The notes: generated by a model not told the origin, from the sequence alone. Positions 1 to 63,859 are shown, counted from the stretch's first letter. The stretch: DNA of 64,000 nucleotides from Cercozoa sp. M6MM (GCA_040357565.1 JBDODJ010000015.1); one strand, 5' to 3'. Program-made: numbers and translations.

Positions 1-3000
1 GAGTGAAAGCGTTTACCTTCATGAGCGCATCCTTTGCTGCGTCGCGTTGTTCCTGAAGCACAAGATATGCTGATATCAGGTCGATCAAAAAACAAGCTAC
101 AGCAGTTTCCTGGAGTTGGGACTCAACGCTTTCGATCGTTTGTGTGTTGCTCTGCCCAAAGCAGAACATCAGTGAGTTAAATCCAGTTCAGTCCAGTTTC
201 AGTCCAGTTGAACACAGATTTACCGCGTTGAACGGTTGCTGAAGAGCTTTCTCTAACGCCTGAAACAATCAAACATCAGTTAGAAGCCAGAGAGAACGAG
301 AAGTAAAAAAGAAAGCACCCCAACTTGGCCTTGAATCTGAATCTTGCGCTCGTGCGTTCGACCGGCATTTTCGAACTGCTCGAAAAAAAAGAATGAACAC
401 AACCAGTCATTTCCAAAACAAGTTTGTTCGCATGTGGTACCTGCGCAATCTCGCGTTGCAGCGTCGAAGTTTCGCTCCGCAGAGCCGAAGTGCTGTTTAA
501 AGCAAAAGACAAGGTCAGACCTAAAAAAAAACTAAGCGAGTTCAAAAATTACGCTGCGTTGAGAGCGCGAATCTTCTGACGCGCCTGACTGACCTGTCAC
601 AGGAAAATACGAAACTAAAAATCCAAGAGAACACCAAAAACCAGAAAAATACAAGAAAATACCGAATCCTGAGCTGAGTTGAAATCCGCGTTAATTCGCG
701 AGAGTTTTTCTTCGGCCAACGCGGCGCGTTTCTTGGCTGATTTTTGTTTTCGACATATTTATAGTGGGACAAATACGAAAAAACAATGGGTACCCTCCTC
801 GAACTCAGCATCGGCCTGTTTGCGCAGCAGCGTCTGAGCGTGGATCTCGCTACATAACACGCAGTGATAGAATGAACAGACTTGTTTCGAAAGGCAGTAA
901 CAACAAAGGGCAGTACCGCTGTGTACGCAAACGAGCGCGATCGGCCGTGTAGCCACCTGTCCAGTTGTTCAGTCAATTTGTACGGTCCATTCGTACAGCA
1001 TCATCCCTTCAGTACCTCGAATCTCGTTGCGCCGCGAGACCTGATCGCCATCGAGCGTGACGCAGTCGAAACGGTGTCGTTCCGCGTACCTGTACCGTCC
1101 ACATGTACCGTCCACATGTACCAGGTTAGCACACTTTGGTCCAAATAGACCAAAGAAACGCGAGAGAAAAAGAGAGAAAGTACTCCTTGGCACTGGCAAG
1201 TGTTTCCGCCACGAGAGTGCGACCAAAGATCTAAACAACACAATGCTCTGTACGGTCCGTTTGGACCTGTGGACACGTTGTACCTGACGCATAGCCGGTT
1301 CCGTTAAGGGAGTAAACTGAATCTGGTCCACCAAAGCGGCCACATCGGCACTGCGCGGGTACTCCTCGACGCGCATACTGCACAGGGCAGAAGCCATAGA
1401 CTCCACATAGTACCCTTAAACACACTCTATCGTAAAAAAACCTCTTAAACAAAAAACTACCGCTGTCTCAGTCGATTAAGCGGCATGAACGTGATGCGAC
1501 CGCTGCTTTTTTGCGACTGTACAGTAGGGAATAAACTGAGGTGTAGGGGTAGTAGGGAGTAACTGAGGTGTAGGGGTAGTAGGGAATAAACTGAGGTGTT
1601 GCGGGTAGACACACCTGCTGCAGCAGTCGAATGCACTGCGCCGCCACGGAATCATCGGTGACCACCCACTGCATCAGTTGATTGTGTGCAACCGTCTGTC
1701 CAAGTCGCACAGAAGATCGATCAGTCAGGTCAGACAAATACGAAAACACAAAAAGCCACCTCAATCGCCAGTTCGAAGCGACTGTCGTATTTCAGCAGTT
1801 CGATCACCGAGCCCAGGACGCCTTGCTGCGTGTCCTCCTTGTACCACCTGTATAAGTACATTTGGATCGTATGCTATGACCGTATATATGGACTGCATAT
1901 TTGATTGTACATATGGACAAAAATGAAAGGTGTTAAACATACAGATCGTGCTGATCGCAGATTTTGCGCATCTCGCTCTGTGCCTCGGCCATGTCGCGCA
2001 CCCTAAATCAAATCTATTTATTGACCCGTCCATTTGGTCCACCATGGGTTCATAAACGGTCCTTTTGGACAAGGGAGACCGAAATTAAGACCGAAATTAA
2101 GGGGGATACATCATCCGACTGAGTGCATCGCGCGAGTGCTTTTCGGCGCGCAGTGCCGAGTCGCGTTTCTCGCGTGCTTCCTCCTGTTTCACACATCCCG
2201 TCCGTATGGACCCCCTCCATTTTGACTCGTCCATTTTGAGTTGTCCACTCTGACCCGTCCATCTGGACAAGCAGAAGAAACACGTGTACCTGGTTGCGCC
2301 AACAGAGCTGTTTCGCATCGAACACTTGGCCACGCTGCTTGCTGCAGGATAAAGGGATAAAGGAATAAAGGGATAAGGGGGGGGGGGGGGGGTAAACGGA
2401 CTTAAGTTTGTCCAGAGCGGCGTTATGCTGCGCGAGTGTTTGTTTGAGCTGTTCGGCCTCGTTCTCCTTGATTTCGCACTCTTCAGTCAACTGGTCAGGA
2501 AACAAACAAACGCGTTTGCAGCGCGGAAATAAAATTCTAACAGGTTCTCTACCTCTGCGAGACGACGTTTCAGTTTCTCACTGTTCTTTCGCGCCACTCT
2601 TTCGTCTACAGGCACAAAATCTCCAAGTTTTACAAGATAACAAAATAAACTGTACTTTCTTCCAGAGTGGAGAAACGCTCGCGCAGCTCAGTCTGCATAT
2701 TTTGTGTATGCATTTTGAAGCTAAAAGAAGGAAAAAGGATGTACGAGCTGCGCTGTTAACGCTTCGTCGCGTTCGGCTTGACTTTTAAATCCGAGAGCTT
2801 GCAGTTCCTGCATTCGAAAAAACTGAATTTCAGACCTTCAAGTTTTTGCGGGAAGTAAACTGACAGTTTCGAGAGCAGCAAACTGCGCCGACAGTTCATC
2901 GACTTCTTCGCGCTTTTCCGTCTGCCAGAAAACAATAAAATACTAAACCCTGGATTCAGAACAAAGAACAATGCACCTCACTCGCACGCAGTTTTTTCAG

Positions 3001-6462: not shown

Positions 6463-6926
6463 CTGAATGGTACTAAGTGCACGTTCCTCCTTTGACAAAG
6501 CTCTATTGCCCGGATTTTGCTGATTATGGTTCTGTATTTGTAGTTTCCTGTTTCCGCGCGGAAAAAGGGATGTTCATGGTCTCCAGTTCTCAGGCCGAAG
6601 CACGGGGTGCTAGGATACAAGCACAAGCAGATCGATGCGCAGGAAGTGGTCGTTTGTGATCTGTGATTGGTCAGATCAAATCACAGCCCATCCTCGCAAA
6701 AATAAAACGCCCGTGACTTTTTTTCTGCGAGTGGGCGTTGATCGCCAGACAAGCTTGTTAGCAACGAAACAGTGAAAAGGACACCGAGAGAACCGCATCG
6801 GGAGCAGGTGTGCATTTTGGGTACGCGCATGTTTTTTTGACAAGTTTCTTTTGGACCCAGTGTCTCCAGAGGACGAACTTGCTTGCTTGATTGTCCGGTT
6901 GCTGTCTCTTGCAGGGCCAAGCCAAA

Positions 6927-40513: not shown

Positions 40514-43500
40514 TCAAAAAACGGGCAGTGCGTTGTCGACGGCGGCGTCGGACGTGTCGACGGCAGCGTCCGAGTCGGCGCCGTGCTCGCGCTTGTGTCG
40601 CTCGAGTTCGCGCGCCTGCTTCTGGGCCGACAGGATGAGACCGACAAAGACGTTGGTGAACAGCACCAGGACGATCTAAACGATGGCGTGTACATTGAAA
40701 CATAAAAGTACAGTGTGTACAGTGTCTGCATAGTCAGCTACCATAGTGAAGGCGACGTAGAGCCAGGCGATGGCGTACGAGGTCGCCAGGATCGAGTTGA
40801 ACACAGTGACATGCCTGAACAATGATGCATTTGAATAGTACTGGACAAGTCATGCCAGTCAAGAAAGAGACATCGTACAGGTTCTCAATGAAGAGTCGGA
40901 ACATGGTGAGATAGGCCTCGGTCAAGTCGGCCCATCCAAAAGGACCGCGTCGACTGGCCGGCAAGACGCGCGTCCACGTGTCGCCGATGAGGTAGACGCC
41001 AATAACACCAAAGACGTACCACACGGCCAGCATGCAAAGCAGCAGCGACGCGAACTGAGGCGCGATACGGTACAGCGAGAACACGATGCGTCGCAACGAC
41101 ACCGATGACACGAACACGCGCAACGATGTCAGACACAGTGCGAAACGTGCCAAGTCACTGCTGTCGCTGTTGTCGCCGTTGCCTCCAGTCAGTACAATCA
41201 GCAGTGCCAGTACTGGACTGCCTAGCACCAGCACCAAGTCTGTTCGGTTCGCTTGCTGCCGGAAGTCCTTCGGCGGGTGCTACCCAAAACCAAGGACACA
41301 CTCTAGAACTCCTACATAATACTGCCACGCAGCTAGTGTACCACAGTGTCGTGTTTCCAGAAGGCGAGCCAGCCCCAGCCGAGAATCTAAACAAACATTT
41401 AATTCGCTGTTTGCGCTCGAGTTTGTGAAATTTCGCGCGAATTTGCGTCAATTTCGGCTGAGAGCACCTTGCTGCCGACTTCGAGAATCTGCAGGACCGA
41501 CAAAGCGATCAACATGCCGTCTAGCTCGTCTTCGTTCCGTGCTGCACAATACAAAAACTGTCAAGTGCCTTCCGCGCGGACCCGACAGGTCAGTTTACCA
41601 AGACCGTACTGTGCCAACACTAGAAGCTGCAGCAGCAGCACCAACTGCGATACCGTCACGGCAGCACGTGACATGCAGGCACGCCGACACACCTGCCAGG
41701 TTAAAGGGGAATTAAAGAAGAGTTAAAGGGGGATGAAAAGGGAAGATGACACCTGCACCAGCGGCCGCAGACAAGCCGAATCACGCGATGCCCAGGACCA
41801 GGCATTGGGACTACGACAGGGGGTCAAATGGGGTGGAGAAGGAGGTGTAAAGGGGTGTAAAGGGAGGTGTAAAGAGAGGTGTAAAGAGAGGTGTAAAGGG
41901 AGGTGTAAAGAGAGGTGTAAAGGGAGGGTGTAAAGGGTGTAAAGGGGGGTAAAGTTACGGAATATCTTGGTGACTCCTTGCGCGTAAGTACTCCTGACTG
42001 GCAGGCGAGCGGCGCCACCGGTCCAGTGCGCGCATCACACTCAGAAACAATCCGCGACTCATCACGGCTGCGCGGGGATGGGTGAAAGGAAGCAAGAGGG
42101 TGGGGGGGGGGGGGTAAAACTACGGAAATCACTGCCGACACATGCTGCGTGTCCCGGAGCAACTATACGGGGGGAGGGGGGGTAAAACAAGATAACAGAG
42201 GAAGGGAGCAAAGACACCCTGCAACATGAAGGAGGCCAGCAGGTCGTCGACGAGAGCGTCGCGCGACTCCTCGAGCGACAAGCGGCGCCGCAGAAACTGC
42301 CGCACCCTCTGCAGTGTCACTGTGCCTGTACAAACATATCGTACAAACGGACCAACGGTACACGGACACAAACGTTAAAAGGCAATAGTTAAGGGGGGCA
42401 ATATTTAAGGTTGCAATAGTTAAGGTTGTAAGGTTGCAATGGTTAAGGTTGCAATGGTTAAGGGAGCAATAGTTAAGGGAGCAATAGTTAAGGGAGGACC
42501 CACCTGCCCGCGCGAGTGACGCTTGCTGCTGCGCCGCCGCTTCGTCGTCGGCCTCGTCTATGTCGCCGTCGCCGTCCATGTCCTTGAACTGGAGGGAGGG
42601 GGGGGTAAAGAGCGGGTAAAGAGGGGGTAAAGAGGGAATGTAAGAGAGGGGTAAAAAGCGGGAAAAGGGGTGTAAAGTGGGGGTAAAAGGGGGATTAAAA
42701 AAAATAGAGGGGGGGGGGGGGGGGGTAAAGCACAAGACACCGCCAGTGTAGCCACACCGCCCTTAGACATGGCACGCAATGTCACCCAGTCTGTACACAC
42801 ACATTTAAGGGGTCATATGTACGTTACTTAAGAGGGGCGAGATACCGTCCTGATGCGAAACGACAGTGTCGTCGCTCATTATCGCAAATGCCGCCACATA
42901 TCGCGCGTCACGCAACTGGTGAACAGGGGTAAGGTAGGGGGGTAAAGGGGGGGGGGGTTAAACTACCGTCTGATCGCGGGCCTCGCTGCGCGCCAATGAT
43001 TCGTCAAACGCGCCTCTACCAACACAGAGGCAGACTTTACCCCCCCTTACCCCCCCCCCCCAAAGTGAAAGTACGAGAAATCGTCGATGATGAGGCCAAG
43101 AACGACAATGTAACCGAACAGCGCCAGCACGACGAAATACAGAATCAAGAGGCCGCTTTTGCTCATGGCCTGTGTTGTCCCGTATTTTCTCATCCCAGGA
43201 AAATACCAGAAACAACAAGAACTACAACAACTGCAACGTACGGGATACACGATGTCAAAGTAGTTGTCACCCGTCGATATGAACACAAACACCGACACCA
43301 ATGACCGATTGACTGAATTCAACGGGGGGGGGGGGGGGGTAAAGGTACATGGGGTATATGGGTATAGGGGGTAAGAGGTACAGTTGAACATCGAATTGAT
43401 CGGTTCCTGGATATCATTGAGCACGGTGCGGAACAGCATGGTTCCCAGTGCCGCAGCAACCTACACAAAGCATGATCGATCAACAAAAACCGATCAGAAC

Positions 43501-44935
43501 CGATCAAGAATCGATCATAAACGCCAAAGGACAATTTGGTAACAGTACGATATTGCACGCCAAGAAGAGAAACATCACGGCGCGCATTGACGGTGCCAGC
43601 AGCGTTCTAACGAACGTCGACGTCACTCGACGCACCTGCTCGCACATCACACAACAACGTTCGCTTTAACTATTACTGTCAAAACTGTATGTCAATGAAA
43701 GCTTTCATTTCAGTTCACTTTAAAACTTCCAGTTATCAAGAAGCTATGAAACTTCAGATACAGCTTTAAACTTCCAGTTAAAGCTGTAAAACTGCCAGTT
43801 AAAGTTCAAAGATTCCAGTTAAGCCTCAAAGTTGTCAGTTAAAGGTTCAAAGTTGCTTTAAAAGCCCAAACACAATTAGAGTGAAGAAAATATACACTGG
43901 AATTGACGAATAGCACGAGCAGTGGACGGCAGCACAACAGAAGAATTGTGGGACGCTGCTTTTCCTTAGCCTGAGTCGCACACACACACATCCGTCAGTC
44001 AAAAAAAAAAGCAGTAAAGCTACAGCAGCAAGCAGAAAACAAAAGCTAAAAACCAAAATAGGGGAAAAACTGTCAGCAGGTGAAAGTGAATTACCGAGGC
44101 GATCGCCATGATGACGAAATCGAGCCACGCTAGAGTCACCAGCAGCGCGTAGACTGCCGAGTCTGTCTGCAGGTGCGTTCGCGTGCGTGAGTTGCCTGTA
44201 CAGTACATTGTCCAATTAAACCATCCATCTGGATTATCCAACTGGACCGCCCAACTGGACCACCCGACTGAACAAAAGAAACTTGGCTCATCTGTACCGG
44301 TCCGGAAACACACGAGCACGCGAACGGCCGCATCGACAGTTTCCACCTGTGTCACGAGAGCATCCACATCTGACCGAGAAGGAAAGAAAAGTGAAAGGTA
44401 CGACGAGACAGAGCACGAGAAACGTCAGCACTTCTGTCGACACTTTCGTCGCTGAAACAACATAGTTGTATCTATACCCTCCCTTTCTACCCCCCCCCCC
44501 CGGGAAGACAAAGAAAAGAACCAGTCACTGTGGCCTGGCTCGTGTCGCTGCCAAACTCGCTGTCTGTCGAGTACTGCACGTGTGCGTAAAGTTAATTAAC
44601 GGGCATAGTTAAGGGGCATAGTTAAGGGGCATTGTCAAGGGGCATAGTTATGGGAGAGTTGTGTTAGGGAAGTACAGAGTTAAAGTGCGTTACCTGCACA
44701 GGTTCGAAGAAGCCAAGCAGGCAGTGCGCAATGACGACGAGATGCTGCAGTAGCATCCACGACGAACTTTCGCGCAGTCGCCACAGTCCTGTCCATGTCG
44801 ATGTCCATACCGACAGTCCATTTGTACAGGGACACAGACTTAATTAAGGGTACGCAGTAGCCACTCGTGCTGCGAGAACTTGAGACGCGACTCGACCACC
44901 AAATCGGCTGCATTTTTGTACATTCTCATATTCAG
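40514..44935 (-). CDS. Two-pore channel module (2x6TM) of the gene above
   Basis: Two S1-S6 repeats with pore helices; EF-hand-like loop DMDGDGDIDEAD in the inter-repeat linker. Confidence 0.88.
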
Positions 44936-47900
44936 CTGGACAAAAAAAAAACTGTACTTGTGACCGGCTGACGAACGCATTCGACCGCTGCGTCAACCTT
45001 TGTGTCCTATTGAAACAAAAGTACCCTTTGTATTCTCCTCTTACCCCTTCAACTTGTCCTCACCTTGGTGCAGTTGAAGGTCGAGCGAGCAACCAACGCA
45101 ATCTCGTTGAAGACCCTGTCACACCAACAAAAATATCATTTGGACCAAGCACACAAAGAGGAACAAAGGCTACATGAGACGGTAGGACTGTGCGTCCACA
45201 CTGCATACAAACACATGGATGTATCAATCTTACCCACACACACAGGCACACACAGCCACACACACACATAGCTTTAGAAAGGAAACACCGACTCCAAAGT
45301 CCGTCATTCAAGGAGGTTTCCGGCCAAGTTTTGATCCAGTCTTTTTTGCTATAATTTATATAATTGCAGACACATTGTATCTGTACACAGTCTAGGTAAT
45401 GTATACCGACCAGCCGAGTGCCCAGTGTCGTCATCATAGATCTGGAGAACCTCGCGATCATAGGCTCCTGCAGACCAAACAACAAGTCAGTGAGACTCGG
45501 AACTGTGACTCAACAAAGCACAAAGCAAAGCGTACCGCTGCGACGGAAGCGCAAAAGCTCATTCGCGCTCATCCAGATGATCACAGCTGAAGGACACAAT
45601 CATCAATTCGATAAACAAGCTTGTTGCTTCAACCGAAACATACCGACAGCAGCACATAGCGAGACACGCGAAATGTAGGCCCAGGTTTTGTCCTTGTCTT
45701 GAGTCAGTCTAATACAAAATTATCGTAGGATCGTGCGGAAGTAACTTTAAAGTGGCAAAGGTACAGCGACTCTTGCACAGGCAACAACAGTGCCGTCAAC
45801 AAGGCTGGCCGTTTGATACTTGCGACACCAGAGGGTGGAGCTACAAAAACCCCATGATTTAAAAAAAAGATAACAAACAGATTACCATATTCGGACGATG
45901 ATTCGATTCGAGCAAGGAAGCTTCGTGGACGCAGCAGCATTCGACGCGTCTTGTACGGCAACTCGGCCGAGTGGTTACCACTCAGCACGGTTTTCATGTG
46001 CGACGGCTTATCGCTCAATACATCACCCAGAGCAGCCACCTCCTTGTCCTTGAGCTACGGACACCGTCACTCAAGTTCACAAAAACTAAAGCAGAGTGAA
46101 GCGAATCAAAACCAAAATCAAAAACACTGCTCAAGCAAAACGAAACTGTTCAAACGAAAGACAAAACAAGCAATTAAAAAAAAAAGCAAAAAAGAAAAAC
46201 TAAAGTCGAGGCAAAGCAAACAAAATACGAACACAAATCAAGCGAAAATATACCGAGCTGAGAGCAGGCCGGCGAGCCAACTGCGTATCAGTCAACTCAT
46301 CTGCAAAAACAAGGACAATAAACCCTAAAACACGCAAAACAAACTATTCCACCCCCCAGGAGATCGCCTGCAACAAAGTGCAAGTTCTCGTCGAACACGA
46401 TCAGGCGTTTCTCTTGAGTGAGCGATCTCTGTGTGATAACTCACAAAATAAATCTCAAGTTCAACAAAAATAAAAGGTGCCAGCTCACAGTTTTGCGCAG
46501 CTGAGCGTCGAGCGACTTCAACTGAACGTCCACGGCAACGACGAGTTTCAGCACCGAGTCGAAGCGAGCAACCGTGACACCAAGACCACCACTCGTGAAA
46601 GCGTAGATGTCGGTGGTTACGAACTGATCGGCCACAGATCTGTTGGCACACAGTGAACAAGCTTGCTTGATAATTCATAAGGTTGTTTCACAGATACAAG
46701 GTTGTCTAAGACAGACACGGAAGTACCTGGCAGCCTGATACCAAGGTCGTTCAGAGACCTCGTACTGACAGTTGACGCCGAGTGACTCCTGAACTTCGGT
46801 GGCCGTGTCGTTGTCACGTTGACCGCCCTCGCCTTTCATTCCGTCCTGTCCATGGCAGCCGGTACAAATAGACCAGACAAATGTACTGTCCAGCTGGACG
46901 GTACAAACCAAACATGCAATACCTGCTGTAGGGTCAGAAACGACGTCAGACAGAACTCAGTTGACGCGTCCTGCACGCGCGACAGCACGACACTCCCCGC
47001 CTACAAAAGATCGATATCACAGCTAAACGACTAAATCAAAAAGAAGCCCACTTCGTTATCGTTTAGAACATGCGACAGTTCGTTTCTAAACAATTCAAAA
47101 TTAATCAATTCCCTGATTTATCAATGACCATTCATCAAGAATCAATTTAAAACCTAGAAACAAAAGATACAAACACTAAACTTACCGCCAAGTGATTTGA
47201 GCACCGGCGAAACGGTTCCGAGCCAGTCCGTTTGACGAGTCATACACCTTCAAGCCGTTGAAAACCGTCAGAGACAAAGCAAAAACTACAACAACTGAGT
47301 CCAACCTCGTGCGTGGCCACGTATAGCGATGAAAAGCGAAAGGCGAAACGACTCGTTTCACGCACCGACAGCGCCTCCGGGTGCGACGGACGCTCCGTGC
47401 GCCAAGAGGGCTAGAATCAAATTAGAGTTAAGAAACGCGTTTAAATACAGCAATTTCCAAACTGAGTGAGCGAAAAAACAAAAAAGTTACGATCAGGTGC
47501 GAAGTGATACCGTCCATCTCCAAAGGAACCGTCGCAGTGGAATCTGCATTAAAAAGATCCAACTCAACTTTTTTTTACTTTGAAAGCTTCTATAAACTGA
47601 AGCAACTGGGAGATCAAGTATCGAGTTGCACCATTTTGCGCAAACTGCGACACAGTCGGCAGATTCGACCGCAGTCGCGACAGCAGAGTCGACAGCGTGG
47701 CACGACTTTCTTCCAGCACACTCTGCCTTGTGCAAACACAAGAGTGTATTTGCCATGCTTTTGCCTAGTTGTTTTGTTGTACCAGAGGAGTCGACAAGGC
47801 TCGGCGGGTGGCGTACTGCATGCGAAGATCAACAAGACGCTCAGTGTCACTCGATTCCGACGCAATTAGCACCGCCTAAAACAACAAATTACATCAAAAC

Positions 47901-50824
47901 ATTTCCTTTTATACAAAAGAAGCCAAAACTTACATTCAGTGCAACGGCCAAAAGCAGCACAAGGAGTCCTGTCAAAATCCTTTGCTTCAGCACTGCTTTC
48001 TGCGAAAGCAGTCATACAAACACAGTTTGTAGATTAAAGAAACAGGAATGAAACAGTACCGAAGCCACTCGGCGACGGAACCTTGCACGTTCAAACGTTG
48101 CCTAAACATACACACGAACTGTAGCTATTACAGTAAATTGCTGGTCTTTCTTACATCGACACGCTGTGCTTCGGCATCAGTCTGTGCAGAAGTAACATCA
48201 ACAGACACAGGGATCGACATTGAAAAATGTACATGCACAGAAAGCGCAAGGTCCAGTTCAATCGCTGCACGTCTTTCGAGATTCCTTGCCTAATAACAAA
48301 AGCAAACTCAAAAAGAAAACAACCTAAAACACCCAACTTACAGCAATCAAATGTTCTGGCGCTTCGTCGTCGGGCACTGCGCTCTCAAAGTGCGTCAGAT
48401 CGTGTCTATACTCAACAAAAAACGACTTGCACCACATCGAATCAAACGAGCCAGAAAACGAACCGGCGCTGTGGAGCCGTGGCAATCAGATCACCGACGT
48501 GTGCAGCAACGTCTATGGTTTCAACCTGTTCAACAAAGATTGGGTCGACGGTTCGCTTGCCACTGTGGTCGGCAGTTTGATCGGCGGTTTGATCGGCGGT
48601 TTGATCGGCGGTTTGATCGGCGGTTAAATCGCCGTGGTCACCGATTTGTTCGGTGTGTTGATCCTGGTCGTGTAGTGAGTGCTCCACGAGGGTAACCATC
48701 TCGGTTTCGATCGGTGTGGCGACAGCGATGGTTCGCGGAGTCGCAGGTGTCAACACCGGTGCATGCGTGATTGGCATCGGTTCAGCAACGGTGAGTGAAG
48801 TCGACTGACCGATCAGTTGCTGTTGCATTTGCTCGAACGCCGGCGGCATCACCTGAGTCGTTGGATTGCTGTTCAAGCACACGCGTATCGTAACAAATGG
48901 ACGGAACAAATAGACGGGCTGATAGGACGGGACAAGGTACTGTTCGTGCCACAGTCGCACGTCGAGTGCAGTGCGAAACACTTTGGCAGCCGAGATCACT
49001 TGGTGCGCCTGTTTAGTCAACACGAAATACAATAGGTTTCAGAAAAGGGCAGTTACATCAGGTTTCAGAAAAGGCACCGCAACGAGTTGCTTCTGCTGCG
49101 CACGCTTCTGTCGCTGTCGCATGCGGCGCATCGTTATTGTCAGCTGCTCGGTCTGCTCGATCCGCGCGTGCAGTGGTTTCGGCACTGAAACAAAAACAAA
49201 AAAATGTCAAGCACACAGGAAGCATAAGGTAAGAGGATACACAGTGCACTGAGCCACATTGCAACAACCAGCGACGGCAGCAACACGACACAGAAAACCA
49301 GAATGTCCGTTTCACGTGCATCTTTCTTCAAACAGAACAGGTGATGATACAAGGCGAATCGAAGAGTAAAAGGGGAAGAGGTCCAAAGCACACCTGTGCA
49401 CTGGCACGCGACATGATCGACGTCACTTTTGGCAGGCACAGTCCGTGGAAACTGCACACAGACGCTGTCGCGCTGACGTGTGTAGCATCCCACTGCGTAT
49501 CAGACTTTCCAACTGCACTTGAGGGAAACTCGAAGTAAGAAAGATAACATAGGAGGATATAGAACTGTAGAAACCAGGTGCATTGTTCCACATGGACGCC
49601 GTTTTGTCAGACAGCTTGCGCCATTTTTCGTCACTCGAGCAATCACTCAGGTAGAACGCGTGCGTTTCCGCCTCAATTGTCACCAAGAGGTCGTTCTACA
49701 TGTGTCAAATAACAGTGAGTGGAAGGAAACTCAATGTACAAACAACACCTGCAAGCGGCACGTGCGATCGCGCACGAACGAAGCAATGTCAAATGTGGCA
49801 AACACGTGTAAGTTGCCACCGGGCAATCTCGCATGTTTCGTCAGCGTTGAATAACCTAGTTTATAAGGTCACGCCACAAGTACAACGCCACAGAAGTAAA
49901 GTTGCTACAATGAGGTCGATGTACCACTTCCGTAAATGTCATTTCGCACGTCCTCCAACTCTTCCACGGACGACCATCTAAAGGACAATAACAAATATGG
50001 CGAGCCGGAGCTCATGATTTTCATCAAACTCGACGAACCCAGTGTTGTTGTTCGAGACGCTTTGGAACGAAAACTGGCCTACAGAGCGCCTTTAAAGCTA
50101 GAAATACAATAACAGAGCAGAAGGTACCCTTAACGAAAGCGTCATCGAACTGGACCGAATCCAAGAGCTCTTGGGAAACTCCGTCAATGGTCTGAAGCAA
50201 GGGGCTTGAAGGCACTCTCTGCCGCGTAAAGTCGCGTCCCACCTGTTCATTTTTTGTATCCGTATAAACTGTGCAAGCTTACACATTTTACCGTTAGAGT
50301 ACCTGAATCAACTCGGTGGTCGATGTATTGGACAGCACGATGCCCAGCGAGTGCACGTAATTCTCCAGCTGGTACAACTCAAACGTCGACCTGAGAGGCT
50401 CTAACTGCAGTGTTTCGTTTCTACGGTAACACAACTAATCACAGAGACAACGGAGCACAAAAACAATATTACAACAAGGTCTCATCCAGCACGCCAGCAA
50501 AGGTGACATCGATCAGTTCAGACACTTTCAGAGTTGCCGTGTCCAGATCTGCCAGAAAAATGAGAGCAGATAAAAACGGAAGAGTGAATGAGGACTACCA
50601 AAGCGCACGTCTTCGATAGCGTCACCAGCAAGTGCAACGGCGCTGTCGCGAGCACTCAGTGTGACTGCACGTCGCCACTTCACATTACGGTATGTAAATG
50701 TTATTCAAGCATATCTAAAAAATCTTAGGACACAACTTACAGCGCCCCAGACAGCAATGACGTAGAACGCAATCGTCAGAACAAAGACGCCACGTAGCAC
50801 GATCAACTGAGTCGACCGACCCAT
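40514..50824 (-). CDS. Cache/dCache sensor - two-pore channel (TPC) fusion: TM-Cache-like-TM-linker-TM-dCache-TM-TPC
   Basis: About 38 in-phase GT-AG exons from ATG 50824 lead to the channel exons. dCache motif YEVSERPWY..Y..VVAVD. TPC hallmarks: S1 LLGFFEP, RP in S4, pore FISTGDNYFDIVYP, second pore LTMFRLFIEN, S6 TNVFVGLIL. One junction (44976 or 44985 to 44936) is inferred. Confidence 0.72.
41843..41953. repeat. 13-bp tandem repeat (GGTGTAAAGRGAG)n in a TPC intron
   Basis: Direct inspection. Confidence 0.85.
42381..42496. repeat. 15-bp tandem repeats (GCAATRGTTAAGGKW) in a TPC intron
   Basis: Direct inspection. Confidence 0.8.
48576..48625 (-). repeat. 12-bp coding tandem repeat encoding (TADQ)x4 in the cytoplasmic linker of the Cache-TPC protein
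   Basis: TTTGATCGGCGG x4 on the + strand. Confidence 0.9.
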
Positions 50825-58139: not shown

Positions 58140-61100
58140 ATGTCCTGGACACCGAACAAGTTGAGAGAGGTGGTGACCAAGAAGCCGGAGACAGAACGTC
58201 GTTCGAAACTTTTCCAATACGACACGCCTGGTATCAATACATCGTGTTTCTTCACTGGTGCAGATTTCTAGATGCTGAGTTTTCGACTCGTTTCACAGAA
58301 GGCGCCAAAAGGAGAAAGCTCTTCCCGATAACGTCGTCTCTTGCTGCACGTAAGTTTTGTCTTCGTAATAGCTGTATTTTTTGTGATTGTTTGTGCTGGG
58401 CAGTCGACAACAGCATTGAACTCGAGGATGAAGATCCCAATCTCGTGCATCTCGAACATGTGCGTTCTTTGGTTCTTTCACCACACACATCAGTTGTTGG
58501 CTTTGATCCGATAGGAGCACGAAGCAGATGTGGTGATTTACGCGCAAGAACTCGATCACTTAGTCTACGATCTCGGTCATAGTGAGCAGCTTCCGCGCGG
58601 TCGCTTCTTTGCCACATCCGCGCGTATCTCACCTGCCCCTGGGGTAAATACGACCAAGCAGTGTCATTTTTACAGTTATTCCTTCGTGGGCTGCAGGAAT
58701 TGCGTATTCAATGGCAAAGCGGTGCCGTTGCAGCTTCACTGAACATAATTGATCGACTCGCAGTATGTGCTGGTAGTTTCTGCCTTTTGCAGTAAGATAA
58801 CGATATCTCATTGCTGTAGGAGGCGGCAGAATGGCTGAAATTCGACTACCTGTGCATCCCACTTTCGTTCGTTGCATTCTTCAGTTTTTTGTTTTCATTC
58901 CAACCGGTCTGACATAATTTTGAGCAGAGAGCAGGCAAAAGATACATGGTCCGTGCCGTGTTAATGCACATGCGAGACAAGCAGCACAAGCGAGATCTGC
59001 TCTCAGTTGTGCCGCCAGCTGAACGGTATCTCCTCTACTTTTTGTGTTTGCGTGTTTTTTTGTTCATTTGCACTTTTGCACGATAGAAAAGCGAAGGTGG
59101 CTACACTGCAACAACGTGTTTTTGATCGATTAAGCGAAACCTATGGAAACGATACCTTCGATTTCTTTTCGGAAGTCAAAGCAAATATTAGTGCGAGACA
59201 GAGTGAAGACGAAGAGAAGGCAGTGATCACTTTATCGCAAGGTACTGCATAGTTTGCAACATACTGCTTGCAACAAGTGAGTTTGTTACAGATACGAGGA
59301 TTGCGATACCGTCCGAGTACTTCGTGCAGTACCCGAGTGACTCTCTGCTACATCAGATTCGGTAAGCGTGGTTTCGTTTTGTTTCGAATTGATGCTACAG
59401 AAGGCTCACGCACAACACAACACAACACACACACACGCACACCCATATATATAACATATATAACATATATATATATATATCTATATACACACATATACGC
59501 ACAGTGACGCTTTGTCGCCGCGCGAGTCGAAACTGCTTCTCAGTGGCATCGTGCATACTTCTGGTACCTCAGATGCACTCACGTCTATGTCTTTGGTACC
59601 TTGCGTTGCAGTAACGGACAGACACACAGCGCTGCTGGACGAAGGTCAGCAGCTCAATGACAGTCTTGTCATGTACACTGGATCTGTGTTTGTCCTTTTG
59701 GTCTATCTGCTGGTATGTCTCAGGTTTTACTTGACACACCTAGTTTTGAAAGCTAAAAAGGTAAGCAACGGACAAAGCAATGTATAGCAATATGTTTCTT
59801 TTTTACAGCCCAGATTGGCTCTTGTGGACTCGCTGGCGTACCCGTGTTTTCGAGCTGCTCATAAACATTTCCGCCAGGTCACGTCGCATCGGTGTGTTTG
59901 CCCTGTTTGATTGAGTGATCTTGAGTTATGAGCTGCTCACGCAGAGGTTTTTGTGACGATGTCGCCATGCATGCCAACGTCGATGAGGTGATGTGCAATG
60001 CCGATTTTGCAAAGTTTGGACGGCGTTTGGTGTGTTTATTTTTGTAAGATGTGACTCGGTGAGTTAGGTTAATCCGTGTATAGGTGAAACAGCGATTGTT
60101 CCATCCCGAAAGACGGCTAGTGCTCTGGCCAGTGTGTTGCTTTCTACAATCTGCCTTGTATCTTGTGTATTTGTTTCAGGTGTGCATGCACCACCACTGG
60201 TACCTAGTGGTGCTGTTCAATCTGCACACAGCAGTAGAACAGTGCGATGAGTATCCAACTGCCGTCGACACAGACAATGAGAGTAGGACAAATAGGAATG
60301 CAGAGTGTATTCGGCATGTTCAAGTGACTCAACGTGCCATTGAAGAGGTACTATTGGAACCAAGTTTAGTTTAACGATGGGGTACCAACATGTTTTGTAG
60401 GCACGTGTGTGGACACAATACTCGCAAACGCAAGCACAGGCAGGCAACAGTCTCGGTTCTGTCAATGGCAGCTTTGCCGAGTACGAGGACTTTGCGCCTA
60501 CAGCAATGTCGCCGACACAGCAGGCACAAGCCAGCAACAACGATGACGGTGTGTTGCCTTCTCTGTAGCACAACACACCTTGTTGTATTCAGTTAAAGCA
60601 GACAGACCGATCGGCGACAATGCTGTCGTGGCCGTCTTTGACTCTTTGGCCGGCGAGCATACTGACTGGCGCACACTCTGCACGATTCGATGGACATTGC
60701 ACTGTCTCCTGCACTGTCACAACAGTAACCTTCCTAATACCATCTGTTCTTGCTCGTATGCGTGCTTCCCTGACAGAATACGTGCAAAAAATGAGCGAAA
60801 ACGCGCGCAAGTTGGGTATACAATAGTGCCTTGTCTGTTTAGTGTGTTTGAAGTTGTGTGTATCAGGAGGATGGCGGTACTTGAGGTGGAAACGCGGCCC
60901 TCTGCTGCGTTTCTGCAGTGCTGATGTGACGCGCCAGAGCAACCTGATCGACTGCGGTGTCTTTGTGATGGTGCCCTAACCTTGTGCAACGTGTGTCTCT
61001 TATTTGCACAGTTTTTTGTTTTCTCAGGAGTACGCGCAACGATTGGAGAAAATCGGTGCCGAGCAACACCTATTGCGTCCTCTGCAGTGTGTTTTGTGTT

Positions 61101-61303
61101 TGTTAACTCCGGTATCTTGTCCGTCACAACAATACATGCGCAGACTGAGGAGTCTGCGTGAGTGGTTCACGGAGAACGCCATCCGGGTGCGACGACGTGA
61201 AGTCCGTGCCTTGATCCATGCCGAGGTGCGGCGCAGTCTGCAAAAGGAGGCCGTTACTGACACTAGCAATGTCAATGCAACGGCTGTAGGCCTGCCTTCT
61301 TGA
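58140..61303 (+). CDS. Ulp/SENP-family SUMO protease (C48 peptidase, Ulp2-like with inserts)
   Basis: LNDSLV; LWPVC..HWYLVVL (catalytic His); FDSL (Asp); RQSNLIDCGVFVM (oxyanion Gln and catalytic Cys). Confidence 0.85.
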
Positions 61304-61380
61304 TCATGCAACGGCGCGGCATATCGAATTGCGACTTGCCGTTGCGTGGATTTACCGATTTTACGTTAAGAACTTGAAAG

Positions 61381-63859
61381 CTACCGACACGAGGCAGAGT
61401 TAGGTTGAATGCGACGCATTTCGCGCCGACCGACAGTGCTACCAGACGATTTCAGTGGGAGAAACGTGCTGCAACAAACAAATAACCTGGCATCTTGCAT
61501 GTTTTGGACAAGTGCGACTGGAAAACGGGCAGCTACCTGCTTGGCGAGATCTGAGAGTCGCGTGCGCGTGGCAGCGTCGACAAGGTCATTGCCGCCGAGA
61601 CAAATTGTGCTCAGCGAGGCGCTTTCGCGGAGATTCATGACGAGGAACTCGGCACCGGCATTGTCGATGCAGTTGTCGAACAGATCGATGCGCTGCAGCG
61701 ACGGATGGTGCATCAGCGCCTGCACCAGGATCGGAGCACGCCACTCATCTCTGCTCAGAAGAAACCTGCATCTGCAGAAAGCCGGAAAACACAAAGCTTC
61801 CAAAATCACGCATGTTACAATCGCTGGCCATTAAAGCGCAGGAAAACCAGGCCGAGATTCTGAGCGACGAGACCACAGAGAGCCTGGATGCCAGGTGCCC
61901 TGCAAATCACAAAACATACTGCTTCCAACTTTACTTGGGAAGCGTTGTGCTGCAAGGTACATTGCCTCGTCCTCAGGATGCCGCAACAGGTCTCGTTTCT
62001 TGCCCAAAACCTGCAAAAGCCAATGGCATCATCGCGCGGAAGCCGTGTAACTTGCCATACGCACACAGGATTAAACTACCACCAGGCCCTGCAAATCTGT
62101 GCGCTTCTTGTGCGTGTGTGCAAACGCCTGCACATATAATATCAGTCATACCGGCACACCCACGAGCGCGTTTCGCATACCAGAAGGTCTGCGTCGCTCG
62201 TGATTGTTGCGTGCGCCACCAGATCGCGAGGAACCTCGTACCGCTCAGCCATCTCATCGGCTACTCGAATGGAGGCATCCACCTGCGAAATCACAAATGT
62301 GAGCAACGAGGCCCCCGAGCAAGAAGCGAAAAAGAACGAAAGCGTCATACACTTTGGATGGGTGCCTCTGTGTGGCTAAAATTGCCTCCCATGCTGTCTA
62401 ACGCTTTTCCAACTATCCGACAGCTTGGTCTGGGCTTACTGAGCGTCCACAGTCCAGGAAAAATCTAGCTTCAACCTCGGAACGCCGGTTTGATCTCGTC
62501 GCCGAAAACAAAAATTGTTCTGCAGTCGGCGGGGCAGTCTTGAAAGGACTGTCGGTGAACTGGACACGTCCAGGCAACAGTGGGTCAGCCCTTTGGTCCT
62601 GGTGCAGCAAGTATACAAGGAAAAAACTAAATCTGTTTCAAGGTCCAGGTTCAGAGCGCATCAGGATACTTTTAGGACGGCATATTCTGTTACAATTTGT
62701 ATATTGTCGATAGATAACAACAAAAAATAAAATACTGTCGATATTTATAAAAATAGTCAGTGCTGTACGTCAGAAGTGGAGCACTGTGAGTGTGTGCTGT
62801 CTTCGAGAGTGTTTTGGTGCGATCAAAATTAACCGGGGATGCGGTAAGCAACCACACATTTGTTTTTTTTTTGTAATTTGGCCCGAGTGCTTCTTCAGCT
62901 TCCGTGCCGACGCGAAGGCTCACGCTGTCGTGGCACGAGCTGACGTAAAAGACACGATTCTCCATCGCCTACGGCTTCTAGGCGTGCGTGAGCGAGACTG
63001 GGTCTCACATATTGATTTGGTACTGCAGCTTTTCAAAAGGCTGCTTGAATTAGATGCCGCTTAATGTGTCCAGGCGCGACGCACTTACTCGAACTTGATT
63101 GTATCGTGTTTCTTTCATGTAAAACCGCAGTGAAATGCTTGTTTCTCGCCCAGAAATTCCGAGGGAAAGGCAAGCCACAACTCGCGGAGCAAACGGTTGA
63201 TCGCGAAGCGATTCGCCTTCGACGTGCCTTTGGGACTTTGAGAGGTTAGATCGTACTTTACCTGTCTGTCTTAATGTGTGTATTGGCACACTCGTTCAGA
63301 ACGAAACGGCAAGTCGAAACTGTTCAATGCACGCGCACTGACTTATCTTCTTGATGCGAGTATCTTCAGTTTTCGTGACACTTAGAGAGTGTAAGTTGCT
63401 TTTGCTGGTGAGGACAGCGAAAGCACTGGCCTCACCGGCCGACACAGCGAGCGCTTTCGGTTGGATCAAACGGGCAGACAACGCGCTCGTAGCTTTCACC
63501 CAGATTCAAACGAGAAATTATGGGAACCAATGTCACAGAAAGAAGAGACGATCGAACGCAAAGTAATCACAGCAAAAGGCAGCTCAACAAAAGTCGAGTT
63601 GGCGAAATTCTCGGATCTTCGCTTTCGACGGTCCGTCTTTTGCTCTTTGTGTGAAAGCTGTCTTTTTCGCCTTGAGATATTTGTCTTGTCGCTGTGTTGT
63701 AGCTTCTACAAAAGTGGCAAAAAGAGCGCGAAAGACCACGTAAGTCAAAAACTCAAAGACGGAGAAACGCGACTGTGCTTTCAAAACTTGACTCCTTTTG
63801 CACAGTTGATCTCGGAGCGCGAGTGGCTTGCCAGTAAGACAAGAGGATTTGTGGTACAT
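61381..63859 (-). CDS. Protein with C-terminal RI-like LRRs; 5' end uncertain
   Basis: HPSLQRIDLFDNCIDNAGA, LSTICLGGN; upstream exons only partly traced. Confidence 0.6.

Follow-up and report, generated by a model that had tools for sequence, protein, structure and literature searches.

A candidate bacterial-type Cache pocket with a complete amino-acid-binding motif upstream of two ion-channel repeats in Cercozoa sp. M6MM

The 64,000 nt of the Cercozoa sp. M6MM genome analysed here (GCA_040357565.1, JBDODJ010000015.1; hereafter the window) carry on the minus strand a series of short exons that encode a putative sensor and, downstream of it on the same strand, two voltage-gated-type (Ion_trans) channel repeats (Table 1). 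In the channel-proximal part of the sensor lie two adjacent exons, M1 and M2, which together encode the residues Y-EVSE-R-P-W-Y, a tyrosine (of TDIY) 16 residues past the tyrosine of WY and an aspartate (of VVAVD) 25 residues past the TDIY tyrosine. A first-pass annotation of the window had described this series, across one intron, as the amino-acid-binding motif of a dCache_1 domain with all five ligand-contacting positions in place, and both the residue counts and the coordinates that it gave proved to be correct. Sequence comparison suggests that M1 and M2 most likely encode the ligand pocket of a bacterial-type Cache domain, its amino-acid motif complete.

Table 1 Features of the sensor and channel region of the window and their matches in the paralogous gene on contig C217.
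Feature	Window position	Strand	Borders and remarks	C217 position	Identity to C217	E value (C217)
Membrane-helix exon just before the sensor	47934..47999	-	Acceptor cag ends at 48000, donor GTAAGT at 47933; from sequence reading			
Helix-to-polar stalk exon, helix-like	47783..47875	-	Open frame, GT-AG borders	7714-7634 (to window 47875-47795)	44% over 27 residues	0.14
Probable stalk exon	47579..47722	-	48 codons, borders inferred; acceptor cag at 47725-47723, donor GTAAAA at 47578			
Exon M1	46727..46845	-	Ends C-Q-Y-E-V-S-E-R-P-W-Y-Q-A-A plus two bases of a split codon			
First motif Tyr	46764-46762	-	Followed by E V S E			
Motif Arg	46749-46747	-	Followed by P			
Motif Trp	46743-46741	-				
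Structural Tyr of WY	46740-46738	-	Followed by Q A A			
Predicted intron	46640..46726	-	87 nt, GTACTT...AG, phase 2; acceptor AG at 46641-46640; from the spliced profile-to-DNA alignment			
Exon M2	46489..46639	-	Completes the split Arg codon, then S-V-A-D-Q-F-V-T-T-D-I-Y-A-F-T-S-G-G-L-G-V-T-V-A-R-F-D-S-V-L-K-L-V-V-A-V-D-V-Q-L-K-S-L-D-A-Q-L-R-K-T; donor GTGAGC at 46488			
Part of M2	46614-46567	-	TDIYAFTSGGLGVTVA; C217: SELYTYASGGLGITLA	6555-6508	50%	0.007
Second motif Tyr (of TDIY)	46605-46603	-				
Part of M2	46542-46489	-	C217: VFAIDIRLSVFDDVLRRT	6312-6259	44%	0.15
Motif Asp (of VVAVD)	46530-46528	-				
Probable next exon	46353..46428	-	In phase with M2, GT-AG borders; bacterial profile unmatched	6178-6101 (to window 46422-46345; weak)	27%	0.18
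Hydrophobic-helix exon between sensor and channel repeats	44700..44786	-		5063-4977	38% over 29 residues	0.003
First Ion_trans repeat, pore and last helix	43050..43460	-	Pfam Ion_trans E 6.2e-5, profile positions 144-226			
Second Ion_trans repeat, most of it	40737..41279	-	Pfam Ion_trans E 7e-11; own-genome scan E 6.5e-10			
Channel exon	41258-40983	-		2966-2607	38% over 120 residues	5e-18

The published amino-acid motif of dCache_1 domains (AA_motif) comprises, in PctA numbering, Y121, R126 and W128, which touch the ligand carboxylate, and Y144 and D173, which touch the amine; Y129 is a conserved structural neighbour, and in prokaryotes the two motif parts lie 13-17 residues apart (Gumerov et al. 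2022, PMC8915833). The series in the window is this motif, as the first-pass annotation had recognized, and both HMMER and hhalign placed the equivalents of Y121, R126, W128, Y129, Y144 and D173 on conserved columns of a bacterial profile. Loss of R126 is a main difference of amine sensors from amino-acid sensors (PMC10589655), and the window module has this arginine. The bacterial dCache_1AA receptors PctA, PctB and PctC of Pseudomonas aeruginosa, Mlp24, Mlp37 and Tlp3 show the same contiguous arrangement, Y-x4-R-x-W-Y ... Y ... D, and share with M1 and M2 the contexts 'RPWY-x-AA' and 'V-x-V-D-V-x-L-K-x-L'. The spacing between the motif parts is inside the prokaryotic range, with 16 residues from the WY tyrosine to the next motif tyrosine compared with 15-17 in bacteria (102 sequences, one outlier at 42). 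A membrane helix and a long polar stalk helix stand in front of the domain in bacterial Cache receptors, as they do here. Overall similarity to the bacterial domains is, however, very low, and the host is an intron-rich eukaryotic gene whose output is probably a cation channel, whereas the bacterial outputs are a kinase, a chemoreceptor or a cyclase.

The bacterial profile was built from 120 bacterial and archaeal loci encoding Y-D-P-R-x-R-P-W-Y-K-A-A, from which 45 domain sequences of less than 70% identity were kept. In the PDB this profile recovers PctA, PctB, PctC, Mlp-type receptors and human CACHD1, with the PctA structures at E 1e-48. When each of the 2,280 open pieces that the window yields in six frames was scored with it, M2 came first (9.6 bits, E 0.065, profile positions 151-202), its tyrosine and aspartate on conserved columns, and M1 second, at profile positions 141-148 that adjoin those of M2; the third piece reached 3.6 bits. 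None of 99,651 simulated open-frame pieces attained 9.6 bits (maximum 9.2), and hhalign gave M2 a P of 8.5e-4 against the same profile. The pattern Y-x4-R-x-W-Y, found exactly once in the real window, is weak evidence by itself, as it was present in ~11% of Markov-2 simulated windows (98 simulations). The M1 motif and the M2 match together, on one strand and within 300 nt, are estimated to occur by chance at ~1e-5 per window. We further aligned the profile to the genomic DNA with a spliced Viterbi procedure that contains intron states and scores the exons in window coordinates. This alignment independently chose the donor at 46726, the acceptor at 46640 and phase 2, and its score of 13.5 bits was the highest on both strands, compared with 5.4 bits for the next chunk and a maximum of 8.8 bits in 720 simulated 6-kb chunks. 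A Gumbel fit of this null distribution corresponds to ~3e-5 per chunk, ~6e-4 per window and ~0.2 per genome, which makes the spliced match good evidence at the level of the window and modest evidence at the level of the genome. With relaxed intron penalties the procedure overfits, and such runs were used as a hint for upstream exons only.

Read through in the same frame, the predicted intron between M1 and M2 contains one stop codon. Its length is near the mean of 82 bp in the genome paper, and the intron density and GT-AG borders of the gene likewise fit that report of 13 introns per gene and 99.5% GT-AG introns in a fragmented short-read draft (PMC13746701). The 5' border of M1 is uncertain and lies at 46845 or further upstream. 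A codon-usage dynamic-programming gene model trained on HSP70 exons (GC content at third codon positions, GC3, of 0.83) was discarded as an exon guide, since its predictions for this gene could not be relied on and even passed over the motif; it served only to flag a second possible donor at 46765, which is weighed below. Donors starting with GTAC are frequent among those predicted, occurring on the minus strand of the window at 46726, 46765, 47782, 45531, 44953 and 44853 and in the paralogous locus near 6900 (minus strand); the forms seen in the two genes are GTACTT, GTACGA, GTACAA, GTACGC, GTACAG and GTACCC, and this may be a lineage-specific donor preference. Just 5' of the motif and in the same open frame lies a CxxCH stretch, C-T-G-C-H-G-Q-D-G (46866-46840, minus strand), with weak matches to the haem-binding sites of cytochromes c553 and c4 (E 0.25); it may be intronic or a chance occurrence. 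Some bacterial periplasmic PAS/Cache-like sensors bear c-type haem. In a PDB sequence search with single exons, this stretch accounted for the weak cytochrome-c-like match that was all M1 returned, and M2 matched nothing.

A second gene with the same layout is present on contig C217. It was located through its Ion_trans matches, and the bacterial profile then matched minus-strand exons upstream of them. By exon-by-exon blastp the two genes are collinear paralogues that resemble each other in both parts: their channel exons are 38-58% identical, and the exons of the pocket 44-50%. The channel-proximal module of the paralogue keeps R, W, Y and D, and three of its stretches are hallmarks of bacterial dCache_1 that stand where the profile predicts: CFDPRDRNW (P 0.0012), the Y-x-G-x-x-x-G strand AVYLGRGDG / AVYLGRGDGRMIGA (hhalign P 0.011) and VSGVFAID (7.2 bits). 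Its first module contains FDQTSRPWF, in a long exon with 46 aligned profile columns (P 9.3e-5). The paralogue differs from the window gene in having phenylalanine at the first motif position of both sensor modules and in an extra intron that splits its equivalent of M2, and among the modules seen to date only the channel-proximal one of the window has the five canonical residues complete. Across the two diverged genes, the same part of the profile is thus matched in order by each of three modules, which strengthens the case for true Cache-type domains in both; by these alignments they are very probably such domains. The paralogue also supports an exonic nature of the 39 nt that encode Y...R in the window. 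A 3.2-kb contig (C1558:1-3211) bears a fragment of a third paralogous channel; over 42 residues it has 57% identity to the second repeat of the window, and its sensor part, if there is one, is off the contig. Two further contigs with Ion_trans matches, C359 and C32, had no Cache-like exons.

Upstream of M1, the membrane-helix exon has a hydropathy of 2.36 over 19 residues, and hhalign matched it weakly (P 0.1) to the membrane helix at the N terminus of the bacterial profile. The 48-codon stalk exon is collinear with profile positions 33-66 only under relaxed intron penalties, a weak placement. Downstream of M2, the exon at 46353..46428 is possibly the start of the membrane-proximal half of the domain, and the hydrophobic-helix exon at 44700..44786 is probably the first helix of the channel. 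Comparison of the N-terminal with the channel-proximal sensor region gave no convincing match that would indicate an internal duplication. Simple-sequence repeats are found in or beside the gene on the minus strand at 41830-42560 and 48530-48640 (LYTS, NYCSL/LTIAP or TADQ runs), in keeping with the unusually high simple-repeat content reported for the genome. Further away, a Cache-looking piece at 61027-61365 was judged on reading to be a chance resemblance, and the adjoining open frame at 61384-61830 (minus strand) has, by eye, the look of leucine-rich repeats of the ribonuclease-inhibitor type.

In the PDB search, the second channel repeat matched bacterial NaV (E 0.002), T-type CaV (0.004), TPC1 (0.005) and CatSper2 (0.006), and the pore of the first repeat yielded weak TRPM4 matches only. 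The channel part resembles the two-pore channels (TPCs) in having two Ion_trans repeats in series on one strand, seen here as exon-level matches, but the second repeat matches TPC1 no better than it does bacterial NaV, T-type CaV or CatSper; the channel part is thus TPC-like in layout only, and membership of that family is not supported by the sequence ranking. We know of no TPC with an extracellular Cache sensor. Elsewhere in the genome, long open frames with four strongly matching Ion_trans repeats (C7:76380-81771, plus strand; E 3e-56 to 2e-35) indicate a conventional four-domain channel of the voltage-gated type, as judged from these profile matches.

The same five-residue motif and a functional tie to voltage-gated-type cation channels are known from alpha2delta, whose motif is the gabapentinoid site, and CACHD1. 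According to a 2022 survey, every eukaryotic dCache_1 protein carries a VWA insertion, and in alpha2delta it splits the motif, with 27-34 residues between the tyrosine and the aspartate of the C-terminal part (PMC8915833). The window gene differs from these separate auxiliary subunits in that only the 87-nt intron lies between the two motif parts and the sensor is apparently joined to a channel. VWA_N had no match in the genome, and a canonical alpha2delta-like partner defined by this domain was not detected there; VWA had one weak match, on another contig, and none near the gene. No description of a Cache-channel fusion was found in the literature searched.

Taken together, we see about an even chance that M1 and M2 form the core of the ligand pocket in a bacterial-type Cache (dCache_1-like) sensor for an amino acid or a gamma-aminobutyric acid (GABA)-like ligand. 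The sensor module would follow a membrane helix and a long stalk helix, stand immediately upstream of the two Ion_trans repeats on the same strand, and belong to a small gene family that appears private to the amoeba and has at least two sensor-plus-channel genes. The remainder of the module would then share the Cache fold and face the outside of the cell. The ligand, a small molecule that has a carboxylate as well as an alpha-amino group, would bind in the membrane-distal pocket, the arginine, the tryptophan and the first tyrosine holding the carboxylate and the later tyrosine and the aspartate the amine, and the change upon binding would pass through the following membrane helix and modulate the attached channel. 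More tentative, and in our view rather doubtful, is the further proposal of an ionotropic chemoreceptor family in which an uninterrupted bacterial-type Cache domain, linked covalently to a cation channel of the voltage-gated type with two repeats, directly controls its gating. Such a family would represent a new class of ligand-gated channel and contain the first VWA-free eukaryotic dCache_1AA domain, acquired separately from bacteria or retained as a relic of the form that preceded alpha2delta.

Several observations weigh against an amino-acid-sensing Cache module joined to a channel. The profile match is limited to positions ~141-203, about 60 residues, and the other sensor exons of the window, including the putative proximal half and the N-terminal strands, obtained no score against the bacterial profile. 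Pfam dCache_1 (PF02743) had no match in the window pieces, the six-frame genome or the paralogue exons, all searched exon by exon in a domain whose exons do not exceed about 50 residues. A search of the whole genome with the bacterial profile also returned nothing, its initial filter being too coarse for exons. The initial dCache assignment is supported in part, by the placement on the motif columns, the arginine and the paralogous module; a double-Cache fold with the five residues around one pocket is putative. The topology is unsettled, and a hydrophobic run at 49304-49188 may be one helix or two. Within the pocket itself, the distance from the second motif tyrosine to the aspartate is 25 residues, below all of the 26-33 (mode 30) found in 75 bacterial sequences and 4-5 residues under the bacterial norm, because the alignment of M2 has three small deletions that total five residues; moreover, the glycine of 'GV' just before the motif aspartate, 95% conserved in bacteria, is replaced by leucine. 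Such departures, together with the low score of M2 and the phenylalanine in the other modules, by which the family is not uniformly canonical, would also be expected if the domain were a true Cache-type domain whose motif no longer reports the ligand, be it that another small molecule is bound or that the domain is a ligand-free structural or regulatory remnant; even in the bacterial set, 23% of the sequences with the N-terminal motif part lack the aspartate. Opposed to this is the retention of the five ligand-contacting residues and the structural tyrosine in an otherwise greatly diverged sequence, with R, W, Y and D common to the paralogue, which suggests selection on the pocket. In published tests, the motif was predictive across bacteria and archaea and, for alpha2delta-1, was backed by docking and by a mutant of the motif aspartate (PMC8915833). 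We consider a loss of the ligand signified by the motif somewhat unlikely.

Other points bear on whether there is a Cache domain at all. The 87-nt intron, and with it the motif junction, is a prediction, and use of the in-frame alternative donor GTACGA at 46765 would drop exactly the 13 codons Y...R, so that the motif-bearing 39 nt would be intronic. The hhalign P of 1.7e-6 for M1 is circular and was discounted, because the profile sequences had been retrieved by the M1 motif itself; the spliced score alone is not significant genome-wide, with ~0.2 such scores expected by chance; and no orthologue of the sensor-channel gene was found in the searches described below. Chance combined with a favourable splice choice would fit the alternative donor, the genome-wide score, the negative Pfam and orthologue searches and the frequency of the short pattern in random windows, but it would have to explain as well that no other piece of the window scores as high as M1 and M2, which follow one another in order on the profile, that the intron was found independently by the spliced alignment, and that a diverged paralogue has the motif region as coding sequence and three further exon-level matches where the profile predicts them. 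A chance origin is for these reasons very unlikely. Whether sensor and channel are one polypeptide is a separate matter, independent of the ligand. As the median intergenic distance in the genome is only 162 bp (PMC13746701), they could be two neighbouring genes on the same strand, coupled between subunits as alpha2delta is with CaV, and no exon chain is verifiable from ~45,500 to 44,800, where the dynamic-programming model is unreliable. The order of sensor and channel exons and their similar spacing are, however, kept in a paralogue that is only ~40% identical, and the skew in strand composition runs on without a break between 40 and 50 kb. The conserved order favours, without proving, a single gene, and we regard two genes as unlikely.

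Searches for relatives beyond this genome yielded little. With M2, the word search of its open frame produced no candidates and the ESM Atlas no usable match, and a comparison with 1.84 billion representative proteins returned one match, the low-complexity repeat protein P0001, which was judged spurious. A scan of Joint Genome Institute (JGI) metagenomes with the channel exon revealed no relative.

The amino-acid motif of Cache domains ties bacterial chemoreceptors to the human target of gabapentin. All eukaryotic examples known from the literature have the domain divided by VWA and located on an auxiliary subunit, whereas the motif in the window is contiguous and has no VWA insertion. If the interpretation of M1 and M2 as an amino-acid pocket joined to a channel is true, the Cercozoa sp. 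M6MM gene would mark a second evolutionary route of the Cache sensor into eukaryotes. It would also provide, in a marine rhizarian amoeba, a simple and directly testable model of Cache control over a voltage-gated-type pore. An otherwise orphan protein family would gain a specific hypothesis on its ligand, namely an amino acid or a GABA-like compound, and the module in the window, which of all family members agrees best with the published amino-acid rule, is the one to choose for binding assays.

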